The position numbers and the translations under genes are program-made. Positions 1-60,294 of a stretch of 64,000 nucleotides of DNA are shown here, in pieces. The notes beneath the pieces were generated by a model. The model saw nothing but the letters and a program-made list of their open reading frames with translations. It had not been told where the DNA came from and searched no databases. Every line of letters starts with the position of its first letter. Within the stretch, counting starts at the first letter, position 1. Source of the stretch: Macrostomum lignano (lineage: Eukaryota); NCBI GenBank assembly GCA_002269645.1, contig NIVC01002438.1:1-64000 (forward strand), in the 5' to 3' direction.

Positions 1-920
1 GTGGCTACAAAGACTTTTCCAAAGAAGAAAAAAACTCAATCCGTGGCCCATCACGTAGTCTGCAAGTCGCGCAGTCCGCTGTGTTTGAAGGCCTTGATTA
101 ACAGGCTCGGAGCAGAATGTCTGACTTGCACGAACGATTGTGGGGAGACACCTGTGCACCTGGCTGCAAAGTACCGCACCGACTCGTGGATGGTGCTACT
201 TCAAGACTCACTGAAAAATGATCTCCTCTTCAACAAGAAGACCCGATCTGGCAAAACGGTAACTCATTATGCTTCCATGAACAAGGTGAGCAATGCCGCA
301 TTGAAATGGATTGTGAAAAAATTTGGACGAGACTGGCTCACGATTCTGACGAGGATGGCAATACGCGCAGTCCACCTTGCTATTCAGTGTCAAGGTGTCG
401 ATTCAATGGAACTGATAAAAAAGACTTGGTACTGACTGCTTCAAACAAAGAGTTGTCACCATAAAAGAGCGCCTTTTCATCTTGCTGCGATGATTCCGAT
501 AGCACAGCACCACTTGAGTGGCTCATCAGAGAGTTAGGCTGCGACTGTCTCACAGTTCCGACGAAGACGGAAACACGGCCGTACATCTTGCCGCTCAATA
601 TCAGGGCGTCGATTCGTTGCAACTGATAAAGATAGTGCTCGGCGTGAATGCTTGTATCGAATGAAAGGCTTTCGAGACAGAACGGCCGTTCATTGCGCTG
701 CTACAAATCTCGTAAATGACATAAATCTTGAATGGCTTGTTCAAGAGTGCGGATCCCAGTGTCTTACAGTTCGCGACAAACACGGAGACACAGCCGTCCA
801 TCTGGCTGCCCAGCACCAGTCAGCCGAGTTGCTGCAGTATCTGGCCGACCAACTTGGACATCAGATGTTTGCTCTGAAGAACAGTAAAGGAGAGAACATT
901 TCTGACTACGTAAGAATGGA
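1..920 (+). CDS. Ankyrin repeat array (N-terminal part of the gene above)
   Basis: Repeated TxVHxAA...L.WL...G..CLT..D..G motifs across several frames. One-base shifts fall at about 346, 363, 424, 447, 492, 560 and 645. Confidence 0.85.
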
Positions 921-3812
921 CAAGCATAGTGATAGGAAATTCAGAAAGCTGTCTTGGTTGGCCGGTGAGAAGTCACCAAAACAGCCTAATCAGCCAGGGC
1001 CGCGTCCGAATGTTCGAAAGTTCGAAGATGGTCGAACGTCGGTGGCACAAATAAAATATTCCCAAAAATCTTGCAGTGTTCGCGCTGCTAACAGTATGAA
1101 CAAAAGTAACAATTGCAGTACCGCATCAACAGTTCAAAAGCCCAGAACAGTACCTCAGCCATTGAAAAAGCCGATCATTCGCTCTGGGCGAATTCGGCAA
1201 GGTGTACACGACTCTTGCTGACCAAATCCAGACTGCAGCCACCAAGATTCTCGCCAAAAAGTCGTTAGAACTGAAAATATTAGAAATAGAAATACGAGCA
1301 GTCAAAGATATTATTTATCCCACCAGCATCCGGCAGTTTCTCAAGTGTGAGTTCCTGAAGACTGGCGGTTTCTACAGCCTCGATGTGCTTGTCTCCGGAC
1401 ACAGCCTATTTGAGTTGATAGAGAGACAGCTAAACCTGATTCCACAGGTGGATGTAGCAGAGTTTGCGCGTCAGGTTAGTTTAATTACAAAAGCTCCGTG
1501 TCTTGGAGCTAATTTGACTCTATTCTGTTTGACTTTGACGATATTAACGTATTGCTCTTTTTAAGTGACAGATATTAAATTGCAATGATGTGAGCTAAAA
1601 ACTGGTTCAAATATTTAATAAATGAATCTGCTTTTAAAAGTTCTTAAACAGTGATTCTATTTGCGATTAGACAGGCACAATGAACCTAGCTCACACCAAA
1701 TTCTAGGTCTGCTCGGGCCTCAGATGTCTAGATCGCCAACGACATTTCACTGCGCACAGCAGTGCATTGTGCTCAACATCGTGATCACTACTGACGGTCT
1801 TATCAAGGTTATCGACTTTCCTCAGGCCGTGGCCAGCTGCGGACTCAGCACGAACCCGAGCGGGACCAACCACTCCACGGCACCCGAGCTACTCGGATGT
1901 GCGGTGTTTGAGTTAAAAGAAACGCAGCAACGCAAGCGGGATGCTGCGATGTTCCAGATCCCGATGCTCACCCTGACCGACTCTGCGATGCCGAAGCCTT
2001 CTATGCGACTGGTAACTGCTCTGTCGAAATTTTATCGACGCTGCAAGGAATTTGACGCAAAGAGGGTGAAAAATTCCTCGGAGATGCTGCAGCACAGCTC
2101 AGGAAGCACACCCTCAAGGTGAGTGAGGGTTCATTTTTTGTATAATGCAGATAGTCGAACTTTTGTGAAAGTCCGAGTGTGGTATTGAGCTTGAAATCGC
2201 TCTCAGAAATCAGGATTCAAGCTCGTTGAACATTTCACGTCCATGAGCATCACCAACAAAAAAGACACATAGCCTGTACCAAGGACCACTAGAAGTTATC
2301 TTCGTATCGTCGTTATATGAGCGTACCGCTGATGCAACGGTAACTTCTAGTGGTCTTTGGTCTGTACATTCCTGGTGATAAAGAGGTCTGTGTCGTCGTT
2401 GTAAAATCAAGTGTGAGTACTCGTATCTGAGTGCCATGGGTCAATGCAATATACTGTACCTACGAGTATGACTACCACCTAAGTACGAGTTTACTGCTAT
2501 TTTGTCTGCTAAAACGGACGTCAGTACGGGTAGAAAGAGGCATTCAAGTGCTTTTTAGATTCAGGAATCGGTCAGTTTTTTTCATGAGAAAAAATTCTAA
2601 CTAAAGCATGGGTAAAAGGCCATTCAGCGATAGCATACTGAGAGATTTCAGCCACTTGAGTCAGAATTAGTTTAACATAAGAATGCAACAGCGTATTTTG
2701 ATTTTCCCACGCGGAAAGTCAAAGCTAGGTAAAAATAAGGTAAAAAAGGAGCACAATGCTGAAAAAAACTTTCATCTATAATAATTTGTACCTATGCAGC
2801 ACGGAGGAGCCACTTTACCAGGAAAGCTGGACCTCGGTTAGACTCATCGGCAGGGGAGGTTTTGGCGAAATCCACGAAGTCATCACCGACAAGGGCATCC
2901 GATGCGCTACAAAGACTCTCAAGCTGCCCATCCAGCTTGGCGATGAGCTTGAAACTCTTGAAAGAGAGGTCAACGGAGCTGTCGAGAGTGAGAAGAACCT
3001 GCGCCGTCTGCAGCACGACAACATTGTCAAGTTCTTGGACGTTGCTCAGCCCGAGCCAGCGACACTCGTCGTGTTTATGGAGTTGCTGGACGGTCGCACC
3101 TTAGAGAATTACATTAACAACAAACCACTCGATGAAAAAACGGTTCGTCATTTCAGTAAACAGGTAAAAAGTTTTCCCATGTAACTGCTCTGGTCAGATC
3201 TGTTTTGTATTGTGCAATACGAGTGTACGCTTTGATTGCCTTTTCAAATCTCTTCCTTACGACATTTGACTCTACTAGACTAGATCCAATGCCAAATGCT
3301 GCTCAATAAAAACGATTATAGATCTGCAGTGCCCTGCTCTACATGCACAGCCAAGAGCCACCTGTGATTCACAGAGACATCAACTGCACCAACATCATAG
3401 TTCTTGTCGGCAACTCACGAATCAAGCTGATCGATTTCGGCCTGTCAATCAAGCTGGAGCAGTCAGTCAGTCACATCTCAGCCTCTTCTCAAACACCAAG
3501 GGCACTCTAAACTTTATGGCACCTGAGTTACTGGGATCGGGTGAATCAGACAAAACGTTATACAGCAAAAGTGCCGACATCTGGGCGTTCGGCTGCTCGG
3601 TCTTCCAGATGGCCACCGGAGCAAGACCTCACGCCGACACCAGAAGCTTGCTGAAAATGGCCATGAAGCTGTCGAACGACGGAGCCCCCGCTCTGTCAGC
3701 TGATTGCTCCCCAGATCTGCAGGATTTCTACAGCTGTTGCACCGCCAAAAACCGAACTCTGAGAAAGTCCGCGGCACACTTGATGAGGCACAGGTTCCTG
3801 ACTACAGACTGA
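1..3812 (+). CDS. Ankyrin-repeat / pseudokinase / protein kinase gene (5'-partial, multiple frameshifts; could be a pseudogene or contain assembly errors)
   Basis: Reconstructed exons are <1-1474, 1707-2118, 2800-3163 and 3322-3812, with GT-AG introns 1475-1706, 2119-2799 and 3164-3321. Ankyrin motifs (GETPVHLAA, GKTVTHYAS, DGNTAVHLAA, GDTAVHLAA) lie in 1-~920. A degenerate kinase follows at ~1180-2100 and a complete kinase at 2800-3812. Intron 2119-2799 is phase 2 on both sides (AG|C = Ser), joining the two kinase domains in frame. About 10 one-base indels are needed to keep one frame. Confidence 0.8.
1181..2118 (+). CDS. Pseudokinase domain (first kinase fold)
   Basis: ALGEFGKVY (Gly loop), TAATKIL (beta-3 Lys) and EFARQ|intron are followed by VCSGLRCL...AHSSALC-NIV (HRD replaced by HSS), IKVIDFP (DFG changed to DFP, 1814-1822) and GTNHSTAPELLG. 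Frameshifts near 1180 and 1770. Confidence 0.7.
2800..3812 (+). CDS. Ser/Thr kinase domain, STE11/MAP3K-like
   Basis: IGRGGFGEI, CATK, LQHDNIVKFL, VFMELL, HRDINCTN (3370-), IKLIDFG (DFG at 3433-3441), GTLNFMAPE (after a 1-nt shift near 3499), ADIWAFGCSVFQMATG and RHRFLTTD-stop. Confidence 0.9.
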
Positions 3813-3896
3813 GACTTACCTTGTTCTATTCTAGAAATGCACTTACAGCCTAACTGTTAGCTAGCTAATATACTCGTAGAGTCGTATTTCTATGTG

Positions 3897-4990
3897 ATAT
3901 CGCTTTGGACGATCTAAATGGGATCGGTCAGCATTTTGGACAATTAAAATTTTGGCATTTTGGACAATCAAAACGGGACGCCATAGACATTCAAGCCGGG
4001 CCAAAAATCACAGCCTAGTCATGGACTTTAAGCAGTTTAGCAAAGTCTACTAAGGGAGGTTTGGCCATAGACTATAACTTTGGACATTCAATATGGGAAA
4101 AAGCCATTCAAAACGGGAATGGGACTAAGTATTTAGATATTCTATGGGTTTGAGGTCGGTATGTGATTAAATCCCGAGAGCCATACTTGTATGTCTATGG
4201 TTGAAGTTGGGGATGGGAGTGTGGGGGCGAAGCTCCTGCTGGGGGTGTGGGGCGAAGCCTCCACATTCTTACCATAGACAAAATTTCATTAAGAAATTTC
4301 TTGAGTCACGTAGGAAGAGAAGAGAGAAGCTCGCTTATTTAGATACATACAATAATCCTTGAAATATGTCCGGGAAAGTGATCGATTAAATCCCGCAAAA
4401 TAAAATCTATGTCAATAACCTCCCTGAAAGTGAGCTTTAAAGTGGTTTAAGATTTTATAGATCTCTGTCCCTGCCTCCCCTGTTTGCTCGTTTTTGGCCT
4501 GGAAGCGATCCCATTCAATGGCGCCACCAATAGAGATTGAACAAGGGTCATCCATTGCAGGAGCTGTAAGAATCTTGCAAATTAAGAAAACAACCGCATT
4601 CCGAATCGCTGCCAACTTTTGACTCGATGGCAGAGTGGAATCCCTTCCTCGCGGTGGTCAGAAAGAAGAATTGTGCAAGGCCGATCGGGAGATAAGAGAA
4701 TTCTTGGTTGAGAAACTCGATGAAAATCCTTATTGACGCTCAAGGAAATGTCTGAAATGCTGACCGAGCGCTTTCCCGAGAATCCGCATGTTCACTTCGT
4801 TCACTTTTAAATATTCCAATGGCCCTATGATAAGAAATACATTAAAGTTGGCACATTCCCGTTTTGAATGGCTTTTCCAATTTGGATTGTCCATTCCACA
4901 TTCTATGTTTGTGTGTTACCAAGCAGCCCGGTCTGTGGCCTGGCTTGGATGTCTAATATGACGTCCTAATTAGATTGTCAAAAGCGATAT
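3897..4990. mobile_element. Non-autonomous foldback/MITE-like element with long imperfect terminal inverted repeats
   Basis: Three inverted segments match. The left ATATCGCTTTGGACGATCTAAATGGGA (3897-) matches the reverse complement of ~4964-4990. TAGACATTCAAGCCGGGCCA (~3984) matches the reverse complement of ~4937-4956. AAAAGCCATTCAAAACGGGAATG (4099-4121) is a perfect inverse of 4854-4876. No ORF and no clear target-site duplication. Confidence 0.55.
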
Positions 4991-6466: not shown

Positions 6467-17004
<10,538 letters not shown>

Positions 17005-18808: not shown

Positions 18809-20173
18809 TTAAGCCGGAACAACACGCGGCTGTCGATTTTGATGCGGCTGACTGGGAGGTTGCGGTGCCTTCGCTTTGCCAGCGGCTGCCGAGCGCTGAC
18901 GGTTCTGATGGTGCCGCGGAGGAGGCGGCGGTGGCGGTGGCGAAGACGAAGAAGTCAGCGAACGACGGCACTCTCGGGAGTCGGCCTCGGTGGTGGCCGC
19001 AGCAGCGGCGGCGCCGTCCGGGCTCCGGCGTTCCAAGCCCGATGCTGAAGAATTGTCCATGAGGCTGACTGACGTCGCTGCTGGAGGCGGAGGCGGAGGC
19101 GGCGGAGGTCGAGACTTCTGAGTAGCTTTTTGATGAGCCTGCTGATGTTGCTGTTGCTGTGGCTGCTGCTGCTGCTGCTGCTCTTCAGACTCCACCTGCA
19201 GTTGGAGTGTGGAATACCGAGGACTACTGACTGAGATCCTTGGCTCGTCCTCGTAGGGCTGCTGACCCACCTCCGCTGTCGCGTCGAGTTCCGCCGCGTC
19301 GTCACCTGGTCCGCTCAGTTTGTACACGTAGTCGTCATCGATGTCCAGCTCCCTCTTCTGCGAGCAGATCTTGGCCAGGGCGAACACCAGAAATGTTGGC
19401 ACGGAGAAGAATGCAATCCAGGGCAGGTTCTTGGACAGCCAGGTGCCTCCGGAGCCGGGGCCCATCAGGCTGGAGTTGCTGGAGCCCAGCCAGACTGTGT
19501 CCCGGCATTTGGTTGCATCCGAGAACCTGTCGAAGCAGTCATTCTGCAGGGTGCAGCTGCCAGGGTTGATGCACACGAGAGCTGCTGGGCACCAGACGTG
19601 CCCGTAGCGCGAGCAGAGCAACTTTCGCTTCTTCAACGGCAAACTGTCGTTGAACAGAGCGTACGGCGACACCGTGATATTCACGACGTTCTTTGCGTCC
19701 GCTTTGGGCGAGCTGTGCCAGTAGAACCGCAGGTAACGATACCTGAGATAGAAAATCGCCGGGAACTCGGACGAGTGGCTCAAATCGAAGCGTTGGTCAT
19801 TGTTGACTGCGGTGTACTCGGGTATCTCCTTGTCGAAGGTGACAATGGACAGAGTCTGGCCAGCGATGAGGCGGGTGATCCGGACTCGCAGGTACCAGAA
19901 ACGGATGCCATGCGGGTTTACGACCAGATTGCCGAATGGCAGGAGGTGGGTGCGGCAGATTTTGAGCTCGCGCGAGCTGGCTGGAACTGGCGCGGTGGTC
20001 AGCTTGAGGGAGCCGTCCACGGTTAGTCCCGAGTCTAGGCCCAGGTCGCAGTGGCTCTCCTCTTTGTAGCTGCCCAGGTGGTACAAGGTGCGCGAGTAGA
20101 ACAGGCTCTGCAGGAAGTTGCTTTGACACTGGGTGGCCAGGAGGGACAACAGAAGCAGCTGGGAGAGACGCAT
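18809..20173 (-). CDS. Single-exon type I membrane protein, 454 aa: signal peptide, CUB-like domain, LDLa-like Cys module, TM helix, Pro/Gln-rich cytoplasmic tail
   Basis: Uninterrupted ORF with GC-rich codons. [18 protein letters not shown] signal peptide; CUB-like C...C...LRFY...NITVSPY; LDLa-like [30 protein letters not shown]; hydrophobic [21 protein letters not shown]. Domain calls are by motif resemblance only. Confidence 0.75.
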
Positions 20174-32555: not shown

Positions 32556-35500
32556 ATCACCACACACAGAATGGCACACATCTGACACTACAAATGACAC
32601 ACACCTGAAACCAAAAATGACACAAATTTGACACCACAAATGACACACATCTGACACTACAAATGACACACATCTGACACCGCAAATGACAAAAATTTGA
32701 CGCTACAAATGACACACATCTGACACCCCAAATGACACATATATGACAGCACAAATGACACAAATTTGACACCGCAAATGACACAAATCTGACACTACAA
32801 ATCTGACACTACAAATGACACAAATCTGACACTACAAATCTGACACTACAAATGACACAAATCTGACACTACAAATGACACACATCTGACACTACAAATG
32901 ACACACATCTGACACTACAAATGACACAAATCTGACACCACAAATGACACAAATCTGACACCACAAATGACACACATCTGACACCACAAATGACACACAT
33001 CTGACACCACAAATGACACACATCTGACACCACAAATGACACACATCTGACACCACAAATGACACAAATCTGACACTACAAATGATACTACAAATGACAC
33101 AAATCTGACAACACAAATGACACACACCTGAAACCAAAAATGACACAAATTTGACACCACAAATGACACAAATCTGAAACCACAAATGACACAAATCTGA
33201 CACCACAAATGACACACATCTGACACCACAAATGACACACATCTGACACTACAAATGACACACATCTGACACCACAAATTACACACATCTGACACCACAA
33301 ATTACACACATCTGACACCACAAATGACACACATCTGACACCACAAATGACACACATCTGACACCACAAATGACACACATCTGACACCACAAATGACACA
33401 AATCTGACACTACAAATGATACTACAAATGACACAAATCTGACAACACAAATGACACACACCTGAAACCAAAAATGACACAAATTTGACACCACAAATGA
33501 CACAAATCTGACACCACAAATGACACACATCTGACACTACAAATCTGACACTACAAATCTGACACTACAAATGACACAAATCTGATACTACGAGTACAAA
33601 TGACACACATCTGACACTACAAATGACACACATCTGACACTACAAATGACACAAATCTGACACTACAAATGACACACATCTGACACTACAAATGACACAT
33701 ATCTGACACCACAAATGACACAAACCTGACACTACAAATGACACAAATCTGACACTACAAATGACACACATCTGACACTACAAATGACACATATCTGACA
33801 CCACAAATGACACAAATCTGACACTACAAATGACACAAATCTGACACTACAAATGACACAAATCTGACACTACAAATGATACTACAAATGACACAAATCT
33901 GACAACACAAATGACACACACCTGAAACCAAAAATGACACAAATCTGACACCACAAATGACACAAATCTGACACTACAAATGATACTACAAATGACACAA
34001 ATCTGACAACACAAATGACACACACCTGAAACCAAAAATGACACAAATCTGACACCACAAATGACACAAATCTGACACCACAAATGACACAAATCTGACA
34101 CTACAAATGACACAAATCTGACACCACAAATGATACACATCTGACACCACAAATGACACACATCTGAAACCACAAATGACACACATCTGAAACCACAAAT
34201 GACACACATCTGATACCACAAATGACACACATCTGATACCACAAATGACACACATCTGAAACCACAAATGACACACATCTGAAACCACAAATGACACACA
34301 TCTGAAACCACAAATGACACACATCTGAAACCACAAATGACACACATCTGACACTACAAATGACACTACAAATGACACAAATCTGACACTACAAATGACA
34401 CACATCTGACACCACAAATGACACAAATTTGACACCACAAATGACACACACCTGAAACCAAAAATGACACAAATTTGACACCACAAATGACACAAATCTG
34501 ACACTACAAATGACACAAATTTGACACCTCAAATGACACAAATTTGACACCGCAAATGACACAAATTTGACGCTACAAATGACACACATCTGACACCCAA
34601 AATGACACATATATGACAGCACAAATGACACAAATTTGACACCGCAAATGACACAAATCTGACACTACAAATCTGACACTACAAATGACACAAATCTGAC
34701 GCTACAAATGACACACATCTGACACTACAAATGACACACATCTGACACTACAAATGACACAAATCTGACACTACAAATGACACACATCTGACACTACAAA
34801 TGACACACATCTGACACTACAAATGACACATATCTGACACCACAAATGACACAAACCTTACACTACAAATGACACACATCTGACACTACAAATGACACAT
34901 ATCTGACACCACAAATGACACAAATCTGACACCACAAATGACACAAATCTGACACTACAAATGACACAAATCTGACACTACAAATGATACTACAAATGAC
35001 ACAAATCTGACAACACAAATGACACACACCTGAAACCAAAAATGACACAAATCTGACACCACAAATGACACAAATCTGACACTACAAATGATACTACAAA
35101 TGACACAAATCTGACAACACAAATGACACACACCTGAAACCAAAAATAACACAAATCTGACACCACAAATGACACAAATTTGACACCACAAATGACACAA
35201 ATCTGACACTACAAATGACACAAATCTGACACCACAAATGATACACATCTGACACCACAAATGACACACATCTGAAACCACAAATGACACACATCTGAAA
35301 CCACAAATGACACACATCTGATACCACAAATGACACACATCTGATACCACAAATGACACACATCTGAAACCACAAATGACACACATCTGAAACCACAAAT
35401 GACACACATCTGAAACCACAAATGACACACATCTGAAACCACAAATGACACACATCTGACACTACAAATGACACTACAAATGACACAAATCTGACACTAC

Positions 35501-37315
35501 AAATGACACACATCTGACACCACAAATGACACAAATCTGACACCACAAATGACACAAATCTGACACCACAAATGACACAAATCTGACACTACAAATGACA
35601 CAAATCTGACACTACAAATGACACAAATCTGACACTACAAATGACACAAATTTGACACCTCAAATGACACAAATTTGACACCGCAAATGACACAAATTTG
35701 ACGCTACAAATGACACACATCTGACACCCTAAATGACACATATATGACAGCACAAATGACACAAATTTGACACCGCAAATGACACAAATCTGACACTACA
35801 AATCTGACACTACAAATGACACAAATCTGACACTACAAATCTGACACTACAAATGACACAAATCTGACACTACAAATGACACACATCTGACACTACAAAT
35901 GACACACATCTGACACCACAAATGACACAAACCTTACACTACAAATGACACAAATCTGACACTACAAATGACACACATCTGACACTACAAATGACACATA
36001 TCTGACACCACAAATGACACAAATCTGACACCACAAATGACACAAATCTGACACTACAAATGACACAAATCTGACACTACAAATGATACTACAAATGACA
36101 CAAATCTGACAACACAAATGACACACACCTGAAACCAAAAATGACACAAATCTGACACCACAAATGACACAAATCTGACACTACAAATGATACTACAAAT
36201 GACACAAATCTGACAACACAAATGACACACACCTGAAACCAAAAATAACACAAATCTGACACCACAAATGACACAAATTTGACACCACAAATGACACAAA
36301 TCTGACACTACAAATGACACAAATCTGACACCACAAATGATACACATCTGACACCACAAATGACACACATCTGAAACCACAAATGACACACATCTGAAAC
36401 CACAAATGACACACATCTGATACCACAAATGACACACATCTGATACCACAAATGACACACATCTGAAACCACAAATGACACACATCTGAAACCACAAATG
36501 ACACACATCTGAAACCACAAATGACACACATCTGAAACCACAAATGACACACATCTGACACTACAAATGACACTACAAATGACACAAATCTGACACTACA
36601 AATGACACACATCTGACACCACAAATGACACAAATCTGACACCACAAATGACACAAATCTGACACCACAAATGACACAAATCTGACACTACAAATGACAC
36701 AAATCTGACACTACAAATGACACAAATCTGACACTACAAATGACACAAATTTGACACCTCAAATGACACAAATTTGACACCGCAAATGACACAAATTTGA
36801 CGCTACAAATGACACACATCTGACACCCTAAATGACACATATATGACAGCACAAATGACACAAATTTGACACCGCAAATGACACAAATCTGACACTACAA
36901 ATCTGACACTACAAATGACACAAATCTGACACTACAAATCTGACACTACAAATGACACAAATCTGACACTACAAATGACACACATCTGACACTACAAATG
37001 ACACACATCTGACACCACAAATGACACAAATCTGACACCACAAATGACACACATCTGACACCACAAATGACACACATCTGACACCACAAATGACACAAAT
37101 CTGACACCACAAATTACACAAATCTGACACCACAAATGACACAAATCTGACACCACAAATGACACAAATCTGACACCACAAATGACACATATCTGACACT
37201 ACAAATGACACAAATCTGACACTACAAATGACACACATCTGACACTAAAAATGACACACTTCTGACACCACAAATGACACACATCTGACACTACAAGTGA
37301 CACACATCTGACATG
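32556..37315. repeat. 4.8-kb satellite of a 23-bp unit (ACAAATGACACACATCTGACACC) with ~1.1-kb higher-order repeats
   Basis: The variant ATATGACAGC recurs at 32741, 34611, 35742 and 36841. Spurious ORFs of identical length and near-identical sequence recur at an offset of 1099. Confidence 0.95.

Positions 37316-42839: not shown

Positions 42840-60294
<17,455 letters not shown>

Follow-up and report, generated by a model that had tools for sequence, protein, structure and literature searches.

A tandem pseudokinase-kinase gene of Macrostomum lignano with a probable origin by fusion within an ankyrin-kinase family

The gene Mlig002601 of the flatworm Macrostomum lignano encodes an ankyrin head followed by two kinase-fold domains, the first of which (PK1) is predicted to be dead and the second (PK2) alive. 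Its 3′ two-thirds occupy positions 1-3812 (+ strand) of the stretch of DNA analyzed here, referred to below as the window, which comprises 64,000 nucleotides (assembly GCA_002269645.1, contig NIVC01002438.1, positions 1 to 64,000 of the forward strand). The best explanation of our results, to which we assign a probability of about 70%, is that Mlig002601 is a fusion between members of one gene family, in which PK2 is the sole catalytic output and PK1 is a retained, non-catalytic module, and that the frameshifts in the window copy are artefactual. The architecture is real and uncharacterised, and we regard it as a lineage-specific variant of the pseudokinase-kinase theme and not as a new kind of system.

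Gene identity, exon map and family

Six-frame translation of positions 1-3900 gives, on the + strand, ankyrin-like repeats, a low-complexity stretch and two kinase-like regions, with repeated shifts from one frame to another and in-frame stops in the first 700 bases. The frame-corrected conceptual protein is best matched by BOX15_Mlig002601g1 (P0001, 1485 aa), at 92% identity across the whole query and with an identical domain order. The 90% cluster to which this protein belongs contains three GenBank loci, g1, g2 and g3, together with one model based on the ML2 assembly. The ankyrins, PK1 and PK2 lie in one fully open frame in two other assembled copies, g1 (P0001) and g3 (P0083). On the intact copy P0083, Pfam recognizes nine Ank_2 stretches and two Pkinase stretches, that is, two kinase-fold domains in tandem on one polypeptide. 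The first-pass annotation of this DNA, made from the letters alone, had advised that the indels be repaired before a Pfam and HMMER search; handled in this way, the ankyrins and both kinase domains are borne out, whereas the window copy is unreadable as it stands. The same annotation had reported at least eight ankyrin-like repeats and a short low-complexity linker. Both stand: Pfam finds Ank_2 and Ank_4 on the pieces, eight full repeats and a cap can be counted in the window, and the linker spans approximately 926-1164.

Exact exon maps were obtained for P0083 on the g3 locus (L002, NIVC01003868.1) and for P0001 on the g1 locus (L001), and all introns of Mlig002601 are of the GT-AG type. In window coordinates, the exon that carries the ankyrins, the linker and the PK1 N-lobe runs to 1474 and is followed by exons at 1707-2118, 2800-3163 and 3322-3812. 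The parts of the gene within the window are as follows.

1-925, + strand: ankyrin module 2, eight repeats with a C-terminal cap (Pfam Ank_2/Ank_4; 100% open in g3 and g1)
926-1164, + strand: low-complexity linker (KHSDRKFRK...QPNQPGPRPN...STVQKPRTVPQPL), continuous with the ankyrin exon (from translations)
1165-1474, + strand: part of the exon encoding the PK1 N-lobe, with the RSGEFG Gly loop, beta-3 Lys, alpha-C and hinge, to ...FARQ (from the type A alignment); the donor at its end is CAG|GTTAGT
1475-1706, + strand: intron 2, inside the kinase domain after ..RQ/..KQ, at a position common to PK2 and to type A and type B paralogs
1707-2118, + strand: PK1 C-terminal exon, with HSS for HRD, DFP for DFG, APE kept and the start of alpha-F deleted
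2119-2799, + strand: intron 3, phase 2, which joins PK1 to PK2 (from the exon maps)
2800-3163, + strand: PK2 exon 1, a type B N-lobe with GRGGFG, the ATK Lys and alpha-C (Pfam Pkinase)
3164-3321, + strand: intron 4, at the conserved intra-kinase position (from the exon maps)
3322-3812, + strand: PK2 exon 2, with HRDINCTN, DFG, APE and DIWAFG; stop TGA at 3810-3812

The first exon opens 106 bp upstream of the window start. Further upstream, the annotated gene contains another complete "N-terminal helix + ankyrin" module, which a 165-bp intron joins to the one in the window, and the longer ML2-based models P0085 and P0086 have a third ankyrin module upstream of that. The g2 model begins at a Met just upstream of the in-window ankyrin module, and the 5′ extent of the mRNA is uncertain.

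Mlig002601 belongs to a larger family. At least about 25 M. lignano transcript clusters encode a common head, composed of a helix and 8-14 ankyrin repeats with a distinctive 33+33 residue pattern, and the effector after this head is a type A kinase, a type B kinase, a caspase or none. Type A kinases are marked by the motifs HRDIKSSN and LVSGHSLFEL, and type B kinases by VIHRDINCTN and SVSHISAS. The two types have a common exon plan in which ...PTAASAG and a phase-2 donor close the ankyrin exon, a conserved Trp lies ten codons into the kinase exon, and a second intron follows ..RQ/..KQ. Mlig002601 carries the features by which the family is recognized, namely the N-terminal helix and ankyrin head, the phase-2 intron, the intra-kinase intron and kinases of types A and B. 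In no other member, near-identical copies of the gene aside, does a type B domain come after a dead type A domain.

A dead kinase joined to a live one

After one frame correction, PK2 matches Pfam Pkinase with 165 bits over profile positions 2-263, and all of the expected motifs are present (GRGGFG, ATK, alpha-C, HRDINCTN, DFG, APE and DIWAFG). It is 66-67% identical to the type B kinases P0002 and P0005 and is near-identical in g1, g2, g3 and the window copy. The nearest solved kinases are WNK1/3, MAP3K2, MST3/4, TNIK, SLK and ASK1 (MAP3K5), with similar E values of ∼1e-27 to 1e-23; the evidence thus takes PK2 to a predicted STE/WNK-like Ser/Thr kinase and goes no further. It had been described at first pass as an intact-looking MAP3K-like kinase. 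The motifs are indeed intact, but the window copy carries an indel at 3495 and the MAP3K label is only loosely right. The PK2 exon lacks a Met between its acceptor and VVFM and so has no usable start of its own, which makes the translation of PK2 dependent on the upstream exons.

PK1 is far more degenerate. Its Pfam Pkinase score is 21.7 bits on the broken translation of the window, which is below the cut-off, and 39.3 bits (E 6.5e-10, cut-off 31.7) in the intact copy P0083, where the match covers only profile positions 7-171 of 263, from the N-lobe as far as the activation segment. Alignment to type A kinases confirms the replacement of HRD by HSS and of DFG by DFP that had been noted from the letters. 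The accompanying claim of a conserved Gly loop and beta-3 Lys holds for the Lys; the loop reads RSGEFG and has lost its first Gly. The same alignment shows that PK1 lacks 16 residues before alpha-C and 19 residues at the alpha-EF/alpha-F start, including Y..DVWAF (DVWAFG). Among 16 aligned type A-like domains, PK1 alone breaks the near-invariant G9, HRDIK (to HSSAL), the DFG Gly and DVWAF. Missing from PK1 are therefore the Asp needed for catalysis and the Lys of the catalytic loop, along with the Gly of DFG, some of the Gly loop and the first part of alpha-F, while the beta-3 Lys, the DFG Asp, APE and a C-terminal FYxRC motif are kept. By the definition given in PMC13519141, a pseudokinase has lost the beta-3 Lys, the HRD Asp or the DFG Asp. 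PK1 is a pseudokinase in this sense, with homology to the kinase fold and loss of the HRD catalytic Asp, the Lys and the DFG Asp being retained.

Judged by its relatives, PK1 is derived from the type A kinases of the family: it is 42% identical to the type A kinase P0008 versus 26% to PK2, and in a neighbor-joining tree it falls beside the P0008/P0089 clade on a branch of ∼0.44 versus ∼0.15 differences per site, about threefold longer. Against P0008, the ratio of nonsynonymous to synonymous substitution rates (dN/dS) is 0.26, with a saturated synonymous rate (dS, 1.7). When neutral substitution was simulated from a type A sequence, with substitutions only and frameshifts not counted, a stop-free frame survived at the divergence of the PK1 branch in 0.6-3% of trials, which suggests that the frame of PK1 has been kept by selection. 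The saturated dS against type A and the long branch led us to reject the possibility that PK1 is a relic that died recently. Taken at the level of sequence, PK1 is a catalytically dead, fast-evolving domain that has nevertheless been kept translatable.

The join between the two domains preserves a trace of its probable origin. Type A genes end in ...TCA TCG TGA, and at the homologous place PK1 reads ...TCA AG|G TGA GT, so that the ancestral TGA stop (2119-2121) sits inside a consensus splice donor, AG|GTGAGT. The unspliced PK1 frame stops one codon after 2118; the spliced frame reads into PK2. At the other end of intron 3, the acceptor corresponds, by homology of both position and phase, to the one that opens the kinase exon in the type B gene P0005 and in the type A gene P0008. 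The first-pass proposal of a phase-matched intron joining the two kinase folds in frame was correct, as 2118|2800 is a canonical GT-AG junction in phase 2, and PK1 and PK2 meet at exactly this point both in the models on the Mlig_3_7 assembly (g1 and g3) and in independent ML2-based models. The GenBank gene models of M. lignano come from a pipeline that uses RNA-seq alignments and a de novo transcriptome. We also asked whether intron 3 might hide the lost ankyrin exon of a type B donor gene; this was rejected, as tblastn found no ankyrin or kinase remnants in the intron. A separate feature of intron 3, at about 2272-2360, is an inverted repeat of ∼20 bp (CCAAGGACCACTAGAAGTTA ... TAACTTCTAGTGGTCTTTGG) with its arms ∼45 bp apart, which could be a small hairpin element.

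We propose that an ankyrin + type A kinase gene acquired, by fusion, both kinase exons of a family member of type B, and that the stop-codon context of the type A gene mutated into the 5′ splice site AG|GTGAGT. The new donor would be in phase 2, like the donor of the family's ankyrin exon, and would thus join the conserved acceptor of the kinase exon without loss of frame. The type A domain, internal since the fusion, would then have lost catalysis and evolved about three times faster than its active relatives, its frame staying open because PK1 must be translated to reach PK2. The product would be a cytosolic ankyrin scaffold with PK2 as the sole catalytic output and PK1 as a non-catalytic spacer or a docking/regulatory module.

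Several observations weigh against this account. A search with a junction-spanning peptide returned type B kinase fragments only and no independent transcript, and M. lignano transcription units often hold several genes, so that a chimeric gene model is possible. The comparison of the homeologs g1 and g3 is powerless on PK1 (0 synonymous and 1 nonsynonymous change); PK1 and PK2 differ at one position each and the introns are equally quiet, so dN/dS carries no power here. The g2 homeolog (L003, NIVC01001637.1; 3100-3217 and 3628-3993), although it lies in the polished assembly, has a 1-bp deletion inside PK1 (…PTSIRSFSSVSS*) that shifts the frame, and it is annotated as ankyrin-only; should this frameshift be genuine, one copy or more would manage without PK1-PK2. 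Four substitutions in intron 3 of the window copy are absent from g1, g2 and g3, which makes the window copy a separate sequence version. Finally, AlphaFold modeling of PK1 alone with 15 type A domains gave a mean predicted local distance difference test score (pLDDT) of 40 with a kinase-like order of secondary structure, on an alignment of 16 sequences that is shallow, so that the low pLDDT is no proof of disorder. On the side of a frame kept by selection, g2 differs by an in-frame 9-bp indel: it has kept KEI in the PK1 activation segment, which is gone from g1, g3 and the window copy, and since KEI is retained g2 is the nearer to the type A ancestor in PK1.

The first two of these points bear on whether the ankyrin-PK1 part and PK2 are one protein at all. 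Their product could end at the TGA within the donor, the join being a minor or artefactual splice and the PK2 exons an orphan remnant. The stop one codon past 2118 in the unspliced frame, the multi-gene transcription units and the outcome of the junction-peptide search fit such separate products, as does the fact that the models chain two to three complete "N-helix + ankyrin" modules and in this resemble fused tandem genes. We nonetheless consider this improbable. The donor AG|GTGAGT is a strong consensus site in the correct phase and is paired with the conserved acceptor of the family, and the junction is used by two annotation pipelines. PK2, moreover, is fully intact and near-identical in g1, g2, g3 and the window, unlike an orphan remnant, and its exon has no start codon before VVFM.

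The second issue is the state of the window copy itself. Relative to g3 it contains 15 one- or two-base indel events and approximately six substitutions in the gene region, the indels lying at about 28, 345, 365, 422, 454, 492, 557, 640, 1186, 1684, 1692, 1774, 1932, 1938 and 3495. Eight or nine fall within the first 640 bases, where the ankyrin module is broken by in-frame stops. A 1-bp insertion at 1186 shifts the frame of the PK1 N-lobe, the indels at 1774 and 1932/1938 lie in the PK1 C-terminal exon, and that at 3495 is a 1-bp deletion within a C run of PK2 exon 2. The majority are exonic (13/15), the other two being in intron 2; 13 of the 15 lengthen or shorten a short homopolymer, and in 12 it is the window copy that lacks bases. 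By BLAST, the window is 99.8% identical to the g3 locus over 12 kb, with 5 mismatches and 18 gap openings, and the indels crowd toward the window start, where the first 3.8 kb contain 15 of the 19 present over 13.8 aligned kb (p = 5e-6). The polished homeologs g1 and g3, compared over the same gene, show 29 substitutions and a single gap column. The Mlig_3_7 assembly, which holds g1-g3, was polished with Pilon using Illumina and RNA-seq reads; the older ML2 assembly is PacBio-based. Given the few substitutions, the homopolymer-length indels, their crowding at the window start and the clean g1 and g3 copies, the frameshifts are most likely assembly or consensus errors rather than decay. The stretch that carries them is poorly supported and is probably a contig end.

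These data also allow a different interpretation: a recent duplication of the genome or of chromosomes in the DV1 line would have left three or four redundant homeologs, and the window copy would be a true pseudogene among them, decaying by frameshifts. The M. lignano genome is highly redundant, the window copy has substitutions seen in none of g1, g2 and g3 and so is a distinct sequence, and g2 is frameshifted even in the polished assembly. A decaying copy is unlikely, however, in view of the indel:substitution ratio of ∼15:6 as opposed to 1:29 between two polished homeologs. Almost all of the indels are single-base homopolymer changes biased to deletion in the window copy, they drop steeply in number away from the window start, and they are present in intron 2 as well. 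Errors in a long-read consensus, at the end of a contig with poor coverage, would leave such a pattern.

Possible roles, relatives and comparable systems

An AlphaFold model had been suggested at first pass as a way to look at the packing of the two kinase folds. In the 975-residue protein, the ankyrin module is predicted with confidence (pLDDT ∼90) and PK2 moderately well (∼62); the linker falls below 50, and the linker and PK1 together span 23-50. The very low confidence of PK1 in this run is uninformative, because MAFFT aligned all type A kinases to PK2. At a similar alignment depth, the separate model of PK1 described above reaches 40 versus ∼62 for PK2. As part of the core alpha-F helix is missing and the AlphaFold confidence is very low, PK1 may be a spacer rather than a switch.

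By analogy with JAK, GCN2 and plant tandem kinases, the protein could instead work as a sensor, switch and effector, in which the ankyrin head binds a ligand and a folded PK1 gates PK2 or serves as a decoy. PK1 has preserved its frame despite fast evolution; its N-lobe is still recognizable, and neither the beta-3 Lys nor APE nor the Asp of DFG has been lost. Between homeologs, the in-window ankyrin module shows 8 nonsynonymous to 2 synonymous changes, as compared with 4:8 for the module upstream of it (Fisher p = 0.04). The family has expanded, its repeat numbers vary and its effectors, caspases among them, have been swapped, and the sister gene Mlig002250 keeps two intact tandem kinases in several copies. 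All of these would suit a sensor. We nevertheless find this role quite unlikely, since the 19 deleted residues include the beginning of alpha-F, the helix at the hydrophobic core of the C-lobe, Pfam recognizes no more than profile positions 7-171, the pLDDT of PK1 stays at 40 even with a type A alignment as opposed to ∼62 for PK2, and this PK1 occurs in one gene only, in near-identical copies. An allosteric switch role for PK1 is possible but unsupported.

The idea of an immune receptor draws on analogy and on hints from the family, namely fast-changing heads (83% identity over 316-457 residues between close paralogs, versus 90% for the kinases), the 8:2 ratio of changes within the window, and the caspase paralogs. 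One could imagine the family as a flatworm-specific system of intracellular surveillance whose fast-evolving heads sense non-self or damage and in which a dead type A domain acts as decoy or gate for type B; we hold this to be very unlikely. If it were true, the family would be a convergent animal counterpart of the plant tandem-kinase immune receptors. The paper full texts and M. lignano supplementary tables that were searched contain no mention of Mlig002601 (nor, in the supplements, of Mlig002250), and yielded no expression or induction data.

The paralogs of type A (Mlig011736/P0008) and type B (Mlig029208/P0005 and Mlig014711/P0002-4) have the head and exon plan in common with Mlig002601 but carry one active kinase each, and their annotation goes no further than hypothetical protein. 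In P0005 a head of the type A style precedes a type B kinase, which indicates that heads and effectors have been shuffled. In three further paralogs, P0006, P0023 and P0024, a caspase (Peptidase_C14) follows the same "N-helix + ankyrin" head, and the head is thus a shuffled module. These are genes of the free-living M. lignano. ANK-caspases have been described as unique to parasitic flatworms, one annelid excepted, in a 2024 survey (PMC11463336) whose only report for M. lignano is of a caspase that has a kinase-like pro-domain. The platyhelminth ANK-caspases likewise place an ankyrin head in front of an effector, but the effector is a caspase and not a kinase.

Of the ankyrin-kinase-kinase architectures that the first pass had proposed to count, a second tandem is present in Mlig002250 (P0087); the dead-then-live order is confined to Mlig002601. 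Mlig002250 has ∼16 classical ankyrin repeats and two apparently active type-A-like kinases, and it is represented by three 1180-aa copies and shorter cluster members. The two genes are alike in pairing ankyrins with tandem kinases of the same clade in the same species; they differ in that Mlig002250 has classical repeats instead of the family head and both of its kinases keep all catalytic motifs. Since Mlig002250 keeps two intact kinases, tandem kinases seem to be a recurrent product of the family. Separately, the ML2-based model P0088 has three type B kinase domains in a row.

An exhaustive HMMER profile search with PK1 returned no comparably close relative outside M. lignano except one transcript. 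This transcript (L006/L007, Logan transcripts from SRR28338164 and SRR28338163) encodes a protein of 877 aa in which classical ankyrin repeats are accompanied by only one type-A-like kinase, and is the only close relative outside the M. lignano records. The ankyrin-kinase family appears to be restricted to Macrostomum. The first-pass view of a lineage-specific combination is upheld by this distribution, as is its statement that no characterized animal family has this domain order, for we found none.

Mlig002601 resembles several known systems in part. Plant tandem kinase proteins (Rpg1, WTK1/Yr15 and WTK4) have two kinase folds in tandem, one often a pseudokinase, and sometimes an "integrated" domain, and, as proposed here for Mlig002601, they arose by fusion of duplicated kinases. 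They come from receptor-like kinase lineages, whereas the domains of Mlig002601 belong to a flatworm-specific clade, with PK2 nearest to STE/WNK. The two share only the kinase fold, and it is for the plant proteins that an immune function has been demonstrated. RNase L has ankyrin repeats followed by a pseudokinase, as does Mlig002601, but shows no specific sequence relationship and ends in a KEN ribonuclease domain, whereas Pfam matches P0083 only to Ank and kinase families. The order of pseudokinase then kinase is common to JAK and GCN2. JAK, however, combines FERM-SH2 with a tyrosine kinase, while P0083 has no FERM or SH2 match in Pfam and its catalytic loop reads HRDINCTN and not HRDLAARN; the JAK pseudokinase is also a complete kinase fold, unlike PK1, which has no alpha-F start. 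GCN2 is flanked by RWD and HisRS-like domains, neither of which Pfam finds on P0083. ILK and TNNI3K, like Mlig002601, are cytosolic and have ankyrins followed by a kinase or pseudokinase, but with a single domain of the TKL group, whereas the solved kinases nearest to PK2 are of the STE/WNK kind.

If the fused protein is made, Mlig002601 would be a clear and recent animal example of the birth of a pseudokinase-kinase tandem: a stop codon would have become a splice donor, the kinase exons of a neighboring member of the family, lying downstream, would have been captured in phase, and the internal kinase would have lost catalysis with its frame kept. M. lignano is amenable to RNA interference and transgenesis, and the regulatory role of a newly internalized dead kinase would be directly testable in it. 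The wider family is an uncharacterised, lineage-specific expansion in which one head is paired with a kinase of type A or of type B, with two kinases or with a caspase, and it merits attention in studies of invertebrate innate immunity and cell death. At present, Mlig002601 is annotated as a hypothetical protein, and its importance is potential rather than shown.

Elsewhere in the window

On the - strand at 6467-10038 lie the exons of a cys-loop ligand-gated ion channel (Neur_chan_LBD and Neur_chan_memb), whose introns hold a 23-bp minisatellite (7213-8073) and a CTAT microsatellite (8946-9502). An open reading frame (ORF) of 454 codons at 18809-20173, - strand, begins like a signal peptide, may contain a transmembrane stretch and ends in a tail rich in Pro and Gln; Pfam does not match it, and the assembly index contains no exact record of it. 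Exons of an androglobin-like gene at 43488-49660, - strand, match Androglobin_IV, Globin and Androglobin_II; Pfam does not recognize the ORF at 43488-44594, which may be part of this gene or of a neighbor. From 7200 to 63900, many sites carry tetranucleotide microsatellites (CTAT, GACA, TGGT, ATCA, TGTC and AACT) at a very high load, together with minisatellites of 11-46 bp that include a 4.7-kb array at 32562-37313. This load fits the published repeat richness of the M. lignano genome.

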